Positions 21,738-38,227 of a stretch of DNA of 64,000 nucleotides are shown here, in pieces. A program made the position numbers and the translations under genes. The stretch is from Raja brachyura (Eukaryota). Position 1 is the stretch's first letter. Each line of letters starts with the position of its first letter. The notes under the pieces are model-generated. The model ran no database searches. It saw nothing but the letters and a program-made list of their open reading frames with translations, and was not told the DNA's origin. Where the stretch lies: contig OY740783.1 of NCBI GenBank assembly GCA_963514005.1, positions 5,332,001 through 5,396,000 of the forward strand. The letters run 5' to 3'.

Positions 21738-21746
21738 TCACTTGAC
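21738..21746 (-). CDS. IGHM: IgM transmembrane exon TM2 (V-K-stop)
   Basis: Polypyrimidine tract ctctccctctctttacag| GTC AAG TGA completes the canonical KVK cytoplasmic tail. Confidence 0.9.
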   Translation of the reverse strand, partial: VK

Positions 21747-21769
21747 CTGTAAAGAGAGGGAGAGAATAT

Positions 21770-22211
21770 GGGACGTCAGGACTTTCATATGAAGAAAGAC
21801 TGGATAGACTCGGCTTGTACTCGCTAGAATTTAGAAGATTGAGGGGGGATCTTATAGAAACTTACAAAATTCTTAAGGGGTTGGACTGGCGAGATGCAGG
21901 AAGATTGTTCCCGATGTTGGGGAGGTCCAGGACAAGGGGTCACAATTTAAGGATAAGGGGGAAGTCTTTTAGGACCGAGATGAGAAAAACATTTTTCACA
22001 CAGAGAGTGGTGGGTCTCTGGAATTCTCCGCCACAGAAGGTGGTTGAGGCCAGTTGAGGGAGTTAGATGTGGTCCTTGTGGCTAGAGGGATCAGGGGGTA
22101 TGGAGAGAAGGCAGGTATAGGATACTGAGTTGGATGATCATATTGAAAAGCGGTACAGGCTCGAAGGGCCGAATGGCCGACTCCTGCACCTATTTTCTAT
22201 GTTTCTATGTT
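21770..22211 (+). mobile_element. CR1 3' fragment in the TM1-TM2 intron
   Basis: YSLEFRRLRGDLIETYKI ORF plus (tttctatg)n tail. Confidence 0.85.
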
Positions 22212-22330
22212 TGTAATATGAAAGTGCATTAGCAGTCTGTGACGAAGATGCCAGGGCCTTCAAAGAGTACGATAATCGATATTTTGCCCGACTCTTCAAT
22301 CGGGTGGAAAAGTAAGTGGAATGAACTCGC

Positions 22331-22458
22331 CTTCACCAGAGTTACGGCAGCGCCGTAGGAAATGCTCAGGAAGAACAGGATAATGAATGTGGAAGCGGTT
22401 GTCCAGATGTTGTCTCTGTCTTCCTCATAGTCCTCAATACGAACGTCGTCGGCGTAAT
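22331..22458 (-). CDS. IGHM: IgM transmembrane exon TM1
   Basis: Not in the ORF track. gcgtag| [49 protein letters not shown]: an acidic spacer followed by the conserved antigen-receptor TM motif ([12 protein letters not shown]..Y...VT). Confidence 0.95.
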
Positions 22459-23110
22459 CTACGCAAAGCAGAACGCGAAGACATTCACAGTGTTTTCTTA
22501 TATATTACATTGTATTTTATTTATTACTTACCAAAATAATACGAATATTAATATTGGGGATATTAATTTACTATGAACTGTTTTTACGCTGAGGTAATCA
22601 CCCTCAATAAATATATACAAAATCATGACCATTTGTAGCCACAGCAGCTAATAAAGAACCGTTTATGAATAGTTTTAGAGAAAGCCATGTGTATGTATAT
22701 TTCTGGGATTAATTGTTCATTTTATAAACGTCCGCTTCCCATTAATATAATTTTCTAACCGAGATGATATAAAAATGGAAACTGGTTATTGCTTACAATG
22801 TTATCAGATAAACCTTTATTTGGAGTTGGCGACCGGACCTCGGCGAAGGAACTCACTGAACGCAAACATTGCCATAATTCCCACATTAGAACCCTGTTGT
22901 CTGATGTATCCTGTTTTCGGATAGGTAATGGAGGAAGGCTTGTCTACAAAAATAGCTTTAAACTATTTAATAGGCAATACTTTTTCTGGTGTAAAATATG
23001 GAGCATGAATTAATCTACGGTTACACTTAGTCTTTTGGAACGCGTGGAAAACTACTGGTTAAATGATCTGAATTGCCCTTGCCTTTGCCTGTAACTGGGA
23101 GGACGTGTAT

Positions 23111-25046
23111 NNNNNNNNNNNNNNNNNNNNNNNNNNNNNNNNNNNNNNNNNNNNNNNNNNNNNNNNNNNNNNNNNNNNNNNNNNNNNNNNNNNNNNNNNN
23201 NNNNNNNNNNNNNNNNNNNNNNNNNNNNNNNNNNNNNNNNNNNNNNNNNNNNNNNNNNNNNNNNNNNNNNNNNNNNNNNNNNNNNNNNNNNNNNNNNNNN
23301 NNNNNNNNNNNNNNNNNNNNNNNNNNNNTGTGAGTGTGTGCCTGTGTATGTGTGTGTGTGTGTGAGTGGGTGCGTGTGTGTATNNNNNNNNNNNNNNNNN
23401 NNNNNNNNNNNNNNNNNNNNNNNNNNNNNNNNNNNNNNNNNNNNNNNNNNNNNNNNNNNNNNNNNNNNNNNNNNNNNNNNNNNNNNNNNNNNNNNNNNNN
23501 NNNNNNNNNNNNNNNNNNNNNNNNNNNNNNNNNNNNNNNNNNNNNNNNNNNNNNNNNNNNNNNNNNNNNNNNNNNNNNNNNNNNNNNNNNNNNNNNNNNN
23601 NNNNNNNNNNNNNCGTAGTTGTAGAAAATCTATTTCAACATCAATCAGGATTTGTGAAGAAGAAAAATATTATACGAGTCAATATATCTGCTACCGTGTA
23701 TTGGCACGGGAAATTTGCTGTGAAGGTCCATTGGTATTAAAGTGAGCGTCTAAATGTATTTGTGTTGTATTCATGTGTTTTATTTTGTGTAAATATGCGC
23801 TTTTAGATAACCGTTCCTATTATTTTGCATTTCACAGAATGTTTGATTACTGGCCTGTTTAGGTGGATGTCCATGTGCTATGGTGTATATATGTCGTTAA
23901 TTGTGTTTTATGTATGTTTCTATGCGACCCATAAATTATTTTATTTTCGTGCGCTGGCTGATGTTTTGTGATTAGTGTGCTCCGTGTACTTCTGGGGGAG
24001 AGCTGGAAACGGAGTTGCCCTTGTCTAACGCTCGAGCCGGGTGCTATTAAATCCCTCGCCGCATCTGATATTGGGCTCGAAGTTCGTGTTCTCACCAGCC
24101 GCTCAGACCGGTGATCCCATCAATCGCCTGCACACACTATCAGGGGCGATGACCGTTTATTAAGTGAGCGCCACAGTATTCTCGACCCGAAATTAAACAG
24201 CCCACTTCTTCATGGGAATAATCTATTCTGCTGACACTTTATTCCTGAGCTTTCAAGTTGCACTTAGTTGTACTTGGAATTACGTTGCTTTCATTTTTAT
24301 CATTTAATGGAGGCCAAATCACTGGATGGATTTAAGAGAGTTGGATAGAGCTCTCGGGGCTAGTGGAGTCAAGGGATATGTGGAGAAGGCAGGCACGGGT
24401 TATTGATAGCGGACTATCAGCCATGATCACAATGAATGGCGGTGCTGGCTCGAAGGGCCGAATGGCCTCCTCCTGCACCTATTTTCTATGTTTCTAAAAA
24501 TAAATTGGATAGGTATATGGACGGGAAAGGAATGGAGGGTTATGGTCTGACTGCAGGTAGATGGGACTAGGTGAGAGTAAGTGTTCGGCACGGACTAGAA
24601 GGGCCGAGATGGCCTGTTTCCGTGCTGTAATTGTTATATGGTTATTGCATTGATATCGGCTGTTTGGACTCTGCGTTCCAGAAGACTTTCAGCGATAACA
24701 TTGTCTTTTCATTAATATATGGAGGTTCCACTCTCATTCCTTATTTTTGGGCGTGTTTGTGTGTGTGTGTGTGTGCCTGCGTGTGTATGAGTGTGCTTGT
24801 GCATGTGCTTGTGTGTATGTGTGCCTGTGTGTGTGAGTGCGTGTGTGCGCGCGTGTGAGTTTGATTGTGAGTGTGTGCCTGTGTATGTNNNNNNNNNNNN
24901 NNNNNNNNNNNNNNNNNNNNNNNNNNNNNNNNNNNNNNNNNNNNNNNNNNNNNNNNNNNNNNNNNNNNNNNNNNNNNNNNNNNNNNNNNNNNNNNNNNNN
25001 NNNNNNNNNNNNNNNNNNNNNNNNNNNNNNNNNNNNNNNNNNNNNN
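23111..25046. other. Assembly gaps (23111-23328, 23384-23613, 24889-25046; another at 39602-39753)
   Basis: N runs next to (TG)n or (GACA)n microsatellites. Confidence 0.99.
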
Positions 25047-36795: not shown

Positions 36796-37045
36796 TCACT
36801 CTTCAAGAACTGATACATGCACTGCTCACAGAGGATATGTCCCCGGGCACAATTCGCCGTCACTTTTAAAGCTAAACGGTGTTCTTCCAAAGCTCATATA
36901 ACATAACGTTAACTGGTCGGAAGATAGTTGGACATTTCTCAAAAACAATCCATATAACTTTAAGCAGTGAACTTCCATTTGAATTTGCTTCGCTCGGCTC
37001 TCCAGCTGTGCTCGTAGGTTGGAACAGGAGAAAACTAGGTGTGGG

Positions 37046-37124
37046 GGTTTTTGTACGGGGAAGTCGCTGTATGCAGCACCGTGACCCACTGCTGTACACA
37101 GTGAGACATACCCGCACAAAAACC
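37046..37124 (-). other. DH1 segment (coding 37084-37096, TACAGCAGTGGGT) with 12-RSS on the V side and 22-RSS on the J side
   Basis: Plus strand: ggtttttgt-22 nt-caccgtg [acccactgctgta] cacagtg-12 nt-acaaaaacc. Both nonamers are perfect. Confidence 0.95.
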
Positions 37125-37676
37125 TCCCATACGGTTCACACTCAGGTTTCATTTGAAATGGCCTTCGACACGATTTTAAATGGCCCAGCAGTTCACAGAG
37201 AACATAGAAACATAGAAAATAGGTGCAAGAGTAGGCCATTCGGCCCTTCGATCATCCAACTCAGTATCCTGTACCTGCCTTCTCTCCATACCCTCTGATC
37301 CCCTTAGCCACAAGGGCCACATCCAACTCCCTCTTAAATATAGCCAATGAACTGGAACATAGTAGACATAACACCAACAATCTCCCTGCATCTCAACTGC
37401 GTAATGGAATCAGCATATATTCGAGGTCTATGATTGTACACAACGCTGTCGGTATGAGTGAAGGAAAGAACAAACCAATCTCACTTGAATGCGCAGGTTA
37501 CATTTTGAATAATTGCTAGGTTTATTCTTTGAACCCTTTTTAAACAATGGAACAACATATCGTGTTAGATTTGCCAACGGTAGTTTGTGCTCCATTTTCC
37601 GACTGTTATTATAGCTGTTGAAAAAAAAATTCTCACCTCTGGTCTTTGATGGTGAAAGCTGGACTTCCCAACGTGC

Positions 37677-37715
37677 CGCTCTTGTACGGGTCTGTCACTG
37701 AATCCTCACACTGTG
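37677..37715 (-). other. V 23-bp-spacer recombination signal sequence
   Basis: Minus strand CACAGTG - 23 nt (TGAGGATTCAGTGACAGACCCGT) - ACAAGAGCG. The nonamer has 3 mismatches to ACAAAAACC. Confidence 0.92.
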
Positions 37716-38019
37716 TCTCTCGCACAGTAATAGACAGCGGTGTCTTCGATCCTCAGGTCCCTGGCGGTCACGCTGAACATATTATTCGAATTGTCTTTGG
37801 ACGGAGTAAATCGGCTCTCTATCCCCGGAGCGAAGGACTTGTCAGTAGGACTGTAGTAGTAAATCAGCCACTCCAGCCCCTGCCCGGGGACCTGACGGAC
37901 CAAATACATATTGGTGCTGCTAACACTGAACCCGCTGCCTTTACATTCCAGTGTGATGGAGCCTCCAGGACGGGCCGTCGCTGTCTTGGGCTGAGTTAGA
38001 ACGACATCGGAATGGACAC
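37716..38019 (-). CDS. IGHV: Germline VH segment (L2 + V exon)
   Basis: Acceptor ttgcag| is followed by VHS-DVVLTQPKTATARPGGSITLECKGSGFSVSSTNMYLVRQVPGQGLEWLIYYYSPTDKSFAPGIESRFTPSKDNSNNMFSVTARDLRIEDTAVYYCAR. Both canonical Cys, GLEW and DTAVYYCAR are present, there are no stops, and an RSS follows directly. Confidence 0.97.
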
Positions 38020-38181
38020 CTGCAAGTTATAAAAGGCATGAATGGTGAGGATAAAATACTGACCATTAATCCCCGACACTAATTATCAAGAGGAAAGACA
38101 TTGGGAGGGTTGAAGGTGAATGGCATTGGGGATCTACCACTGAGAAACCTGCGTGAGGATTTTGTCCAACTCGTTACTCAC

Positions 38182-38227
38182 GGACTATTAACGCCAGGAA
38201 CAGACTCAGTGAAACCGCCGACCTCAT
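38182..38227 (-). CDS. IGHV: Ig heavy-chain leader exon (L1) of the IgM cluster
   Basis: Minus strand ATG AGG TCG GCG GTT TCA CTG AGT CTG TTC CTG GCG TTA ATA GTC C|GTGAGT encodes MRSAVSLSLFLALIV, a hydrophobic signal peptide. The phase-1 donor splices across a 162-nt intron to the V exon, giving ...LIVRVHS/DVVLTQ. Confidence 0.92.

Follow-up and report, generated by a model that had tools for sequence, protein, structure and literature searches.

The 64,000-nucleotide (nt) window analysed here, positions 5,332,001 to 5,396,000 of contig OY740783.1 of the skate Raja brachyura, contains what we read, with a probability of roughly 0.88, as one germline, unrearranged immunoglobulin M (IgM) heavy-chain minilocus of the cartilaginous-fish type, structurally complete and of doubtful function. 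The cluster lies on the minus strand, running from 38227 down to 21738 (coordinates are those of the window), and comprises in this order a split leader, a variable (V) segment, two diversity segments (D1 and D2), a joining (J) segment, four constant-region exons (CH1 to CH4) with a secretory tail, and two transmembrane exons (TM1 and TM2). All frames are open and the splice phases are compatible across the cluster, every CH exon both starting and ending in phase 1. Exon borders were set from the sequence and phases verified by script; each exon was searched singly, with no joined spliced model. The segments V, D1, D2 and J are separate in the assembly, and all six recombination signal sequences (RSS) and the three intersegment spacers are retained. 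An earlier note on this DNA had proposed a complete single-cluster IgM locus with this segment order, spanning ~1.7 kb from V to J and ~16.5 kb as a whole, and not germline-joined. Each of these claims is borne out, as every segment was located on the minus strand and the measured spans are 1.7 kb from the V exon to J and 16,490 nt for the total unit.

The variable part, which begins with the leader ATG (38227) and closes with the last base of J (36318), measures 1.9 kb and holds a single V, two D and a single J segment in the same orientation, separated by 619 nt (V-D1), 316 nt (D1-D2) and 394 nt (D2-J). The leader is similar to that of Heterodontus HV01 (P0004). AATAAA polyadenylation signals begin at 25691 and 25681, after the secretory stop, and the first one beyond TM2 begins at 20972. 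A tblastn search of the 64-kb window with the exons of this cluster found no further immunoglobulin exons, and an Rfam scan of the window gave no match at gathering score.

Cluster organisation of immunoglobulin genes has been described in sharks and skates since the late 1980s. Both this organisation and the logic of its recombination signals have thus been known for decades, and the present locus involves no new principle. What it provides is a coordinate-level annotation of a canonical skate IgM minilocus. It covers the leader, the D and J segments and the membrane exons, all missed by the open reading frame (ORF) track, and offers a template for annotating other clusters and interpreting those that are partly germline-joined. 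Its unusual points, namely a Trp-to-Leu replacement in V, a weak V nonamer and a probable GC-AG intron between TM1 and TM2, mainly bear on whether this copy works.

Recombination signals and joining logic

All six RSS could be read, in the arrangement V(23), (12)D1(22), (12)D2(12), (23)J that the earlier note had described. Mismatches in heptamer plus nonamer number 0+3 for V, 0+0 and 1+0 for the 5' and 3' signals of D1, 0+2 and 1+1 for those of D2, and 1+2 for J. Such signals are enriched over simulation: at a limit of three mismatches the window yields nine RSS-like sites, where 200 first-order Markov simulations predict 1.2, and six of these sites fall within 1.4 kb, compared with a simulated maximum of two per any 1.5 kb (200 simulations). 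The D1 core (37096-37084) is 13 nt long and open in all three frames; the D2 core (36767-36760) has 8 nt. Work on the horned shark is said to have found the spacer pattern 23 / 12-22 / 12-12 / 23.

Given these spacers, the joins V-D1, D1-D2, D2-J and V-D2 are allowed under the 12/23 rule, and V-J as well as deletional D1-J joining (23/23) are forbidden. The deductions made previously, that V-D1-D2-J and V-D2-J products are permitted and a deletional D1-J join is not, follow directly from this arrangement. The asymmetric spacers of D1 (12 and 22) further imply that serial joining of both D segments is the normal case.

This sequence grammar, taken together with what has been published on the clusters of the nurse shark, suggests a likely course of events. 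RAG, acting in a developing B cell, would pair 23- and 12-type signals within the cluster, and joining of V-D1, D1-D2 and D2-J, or of V to D2 with D1 skipped, in any order, would lead to a VDDJ exon that would then be spliced from the J donor to CH1. Polyadenylation at the sites just past the tailpiece would give secreted IgM, and splicing from a donor inside CH4 (G/GTAAAC, cut between 25781 and 25780) to TM1 and TM2 would give the membrane receptor. This internal donor is in phase 1 and matches the TM1 acceptor.

Constant region and isotype

Pfam identifies one V-set and four C1-set domains, one per V or CH exon. The CH exons are colinear with human Cmu (8gzn_A), CH1 aligning to residues 4-104, CH2 to 126-211, CH3 to 221-318 and CH4 with its tail to 328-452. 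IgM chains are the top PDB hits of both CH2 and CH4, and CH4 matches IgM Cmu4 at E about 1e-46 in an alignment that covers the tailpiece as well. The secretory tail, which is contiguous with CH4, is of the mu type, with an N-glycosylation site and a penultimate Cys, and the tailpiece is almost identical in immunoglobulin heavy-chain fragments of Chiloscyllium and Callorhinchus. TM1, compared with PDB sequences, is closest to human membrane mu (E 3e-07). A CH4 that is 80% identical to the present one (P0009) occurs on a 1.9-kb Logan contig, a candidate IgM transcript.

IgW has six to eight constant exons, and IgNAR has three D segments and five constant exons (PMC5192425). Here only four CH exons lie between J and the TM exons, and there are two D segments, not three, which excludes both isotypes by these counts. 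Judged from its sequence, the isotype is therefore IgM, neither IgW nor IgNAR, in agreement with the earlier identification; the domain composition, the colinear human Cmu match, the tailpiece and the proximity of TM1 to membrane mu all point the same way.

At the 3' end of TM1, two donors keep the frame: GTGAAG at 22336 (exon end 22337) and, 6 nt further on, GCGAGT at 22330. Use of the GC donor would give ...VTLVK followed by VK from TM2, matching ...VTLFK then VK in the human chain; with the GT donor, the product would lose two residues. We favour the GC donor because its product reproduces the end of human membrane mu; the TM1 alignment itself leaves out the last two residues of the human chain. 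The TM1-TM2 intron is thus probably of the GC-AG type.

Table 1. Features of the IgM minilocus, listed in the direction of transcription
Feature	Position	Strand	Details
Promoter-proximal unique DNA	38228-38404	-	TATA-like TATTTAA and GC boxes
Leader exon	38182-38227	-	46 nt; MRSAVSLSLFLALIV plus 1 nt; donor GTGAGT
V exon	37716-38019	-	V-set, VH3-like; acceptor TTGCAG; Pfam V-set E 4.5e-16
V 23-RSS	37677-37715	-	CACAGTG, 23-nt spacer, ACAAGAGCG
D1 unit	37046-37124	-	5' GGTTTTTGT, 12-nt spacer, CACTGTG; 3' CACGGTG, 22-nt spacer, ACAAAAACC
D2 unit	36732-36795	-	5' AGTATTTGT, 12-nt spacer, CACTGTG; 3' CACAGCG, 12-nt spacer, ACAAAAACA
J 23-RSS	36366-36404	-	TGTTATTGT, 23-nt spacer, CACCGTG
J segment	36318-36365	-	YLGYWGGGTMLTVTN; W-G-x-G motif; donor GTAAGA; ends in phase 1
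CH1 exon	31879-32175	-	C1-set, Pfam E 2.7e-10
CH2 exon	29045-29353	-	C1-set, Pfam E 6.3e-20
CH3 exon	28280-28582	-	C1-set, Pfam E 2.5e-08
CH4 exon with contiguous secretory tailpiece	25719-26110	-	Pfam C1-set; stop TAA
CH4-to-TM1 intron	22459-25718	-	contains three N runs in imperfect (TG)n
TM1 exon	22331-22458	-	acceptor GCGTAG; 3' end by homology (AAG then GCGAGT)
TM2 exon	21738-21746	-	GTCAAGTGA; Val-Lys-stop; acceptor TTTACAG

Functional state of the cluster and rival readings

Both conserved Cys residues are present in the V exon. At the position of the invariant Trp (IMGT 41), codon 37903-37901 is TTG and encodes Leu, in the motif M-Y-L-V-R-Q. Trp occupies that column in 7/7 VH relatives from cartilaginous fish (shark and chimaera), which have the motif M-x-W-V/I-R-Q, and in all aligned PDB VH and VL domains. 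The V nonamer ACAAGAGCG is weak, with three mismatches and a broken A-tract. Upstream of the gene, no octamer (ATGCAAAT or ATTTGCAT, with up to one mismatch) was found within 420 nt of the ATG, and the TATTTAA element lies at 38327-38321, ~100 nt before the ATG. In IMGT practice, a V gene that loses the conserved Trp is classed as 'ORF' and no longer as 'functional'. Criteria of this type ask for Cys, Trp41, Cys, an intact RSS and splice sites; the present V segment carries Leu at position 41 next to a degenerate nonamer. With Leu in place of a core Trp and a weak V nonamer, the cluster fits best in the class of open reading frames whose function is doubtful. The earlier description of the locus as potentially functional holds for the open frames, the splice phases and the unjoined segments, and has to be qualified in view of Leu41, the V nonamer and the lack of an octamer in the 420 nt upstream. 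We put the chance that the cluster yields productive heavy chains somewhat below even.

Several of the observations that follow weigh against our reading of a structurally complete cluster of doubtful function. The TTG codon may be allelic or may stem from an error in the assembly. Sequencing runs guessed to be RNA (contig sets, none recorded as RNA) contained 5-9% of sampled words, for a stretch that is 13% exon. This word content is a weak hint that exons near-identical to those of the cluster are transcribed somewhere. An alternative is a fully functional, actively used IgM cluster in which Leu41 either does no harm or is an artefact of the assembly or of an allele, and in which the weak nonamer is enough at a distance of 600 nt. 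In its favour are the open frames, usable splice sites, both Cys residues, the W-G-x-G motif of J, five of six RSS near consensus and polyadenylation signals following the secretory stop, and the words in the putative RNA runs roughly, if weakly, match the exon share of the stretch. However, all seven cartilaginous-fish relatives have Trp, as do all V domains aligned from PDB, its loss entails the downgrade in IMGT practice, the A-tract of the V nonamer is broken and the upstream octamer was not found within the 420 nt searched, so that we place the chances of a fully functional cluster somewhat short of even. A narrower scenario, which we consider unlikely, has the cluster rearranged and expressed despite Leu41. 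Either it would then be a natural example of an antibody V domain that withstands the missing core Trp, or it would rearrange, yield an unstable heavy chain and compete non-productively in the stochastic heavy-chain exclusion known from shark miniloci.

The structural completeness of the cluster is open to challenge chiefly at its 3' end. The N runs at 23111-23328, 23384-23613 and 24889-25046 interrupt no exon, splice site or frame, but they separate CH4 from TM1 and their lengths are only estimated, so that the linkage of the membrane exons to CH4 is unproven. It may be asked whether the membrane exons, or everything below 25046, derive from another IgM cluster or from misplaced sequence joined via the N runs. 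The flanks of the gaps are indeed repetitive: a 56-nt unit occurs at 23614-23669 and again at 25051-25106, 98% identical, directly after the second and third gaps and each time preceded by (TG)n, which may reflect either a local intron duplication or an assembly stutter. Yet TM1 and TM2 lie on the same strand as CH4, in the expected order and ~3.3 kb away, the phase of the CH4 internal donor agrees with the TM1 acceptor, and a second set of immunoglobulin exons is absent from the 64-kb window by tblastn, all of which makes a chimera decidedly unlikely. The donor of the probable GC-AG intron was chosen by homology, and the isotype was called from exon and D counts, Pfam and PDB matches, with IgW and IgNAR set apart by published definitions; exon-sized searches, which cover proteins of 0.55-1.75 times the query length, gave a few unnamed or fragmentary IgM-like hits and no IgW or IgNAR sequence. 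Assignment to IgW (IgD-like) or IgNAR is highly improbable. Nothing specific speaks for it; all three isotypes occur in the cluster format (PMC5192425), and both the CH exon and D segment counts given above and the closest matches of CH2, of CH4 with its tailpiece and of TM1, which are all mu, speak against it. An IgM minilocus that is complete in structure and doubtful in function remains our preferred reading.

Relation to known loci and repeats in the window

The IgM heavy-chain genes of sharks and skates form multiple miniloci in which VH, two D and one JH lie within about 2 kb and Cmu1 follows several kb further on, with at least 120 kb between one cluster and the next; joining stays within a cluster and can take any order, and many clusters are partly or fully germline-joined (PMC2435157, PMC5192425, PMC3308330). 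The elasmobranch clusters of horned shark, nurse shark, and little and clearnose skates share with the present one the four CH exons, the secretory tail on CH4 and, provided that these are linked to CH4 here, the two TM exons; like them it is isolated, with no other cluster in 64 kb. The distance from J to Cmu1 is 4.1 kb here versus 6.3-6.8 kb in nurse shark (PMC2435157). Unlike these clusters, the present one has Leu at Trp41, a degenerate V nonamer, no octamer within 420 nt of the ATG, dispersed repeats in the V-D1 spacer and upstream, and probably a GC donor at TM1. The germline-joined IgM clusters of sharks and skates (VD-J, VDD-J and VDJ) belong to the same gene family; with its segments separate and six RSS intact, the Raja brachyura cluster represents the 'open' canonical form that is thought to be ancestral to the joined ones (PMC5192425). 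The IGHM translocon of tetrapods and teleosts shares with it the 23-type RSS on V and J, the order Cmu1-4, the tailpiece and the predicted CH4-internal donor to M1/M2, and the TM1 core is almost identical to that of human mu. In contrast, the translocon has arrays of segments, whereas a single V, D1, D2 and J accompany each constant gene here, and unlike in the translocon D1 carries asymmetric 12 and 22 spacers.

Repeats are found both inside and around the cluster. A dispersed repeat ending in ...CTGCACCTATTTTCTATGTTTCTA is present in 16-20 copies in the window, one of them at 37190-37355 in the V-D1 spacer, which is the longest of the three because of this insertion, and another at 38405-38700, starting 178 nt upstream of the ATG. 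The J-to-CH1 intron contains two perfect octamers (33229-33236 and 34796-34803), which sit in the arms of a 170-nt inverted repeat (33081-33250 and 34782-34951, 91% complementary) and therefore represent one sequence duplicated in inverted orientation, not two independent sites. The arms are 1531 nt apart and flank AT-rich DNA with a tail fragment of a long interspersed nuclear element (LINE); further copies lie at 48608-48871 and 14144-14318. A decayed LINE reverse-transcriptase fragment (26990-28140, plus strand) is antisense in the CH3-to-CH4 intron.

Elsewhere in the window, long ORFs are mostly retrotransposon debris. Upstream of the cluster, a fourth N run (39602-39753) lies in simple sequence of the (GACA/CA)n type. 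Two 155-amino-acid ORFs, at 62182-62649 and 63106-63573, are identical and lie at a spacing of 924 nt, as a tandem duplication would leave them; both copies come with the same weak RSS-like hits (62744 and 63668), and the pair is probably a repeat unit that is not immunoglobulin-related.

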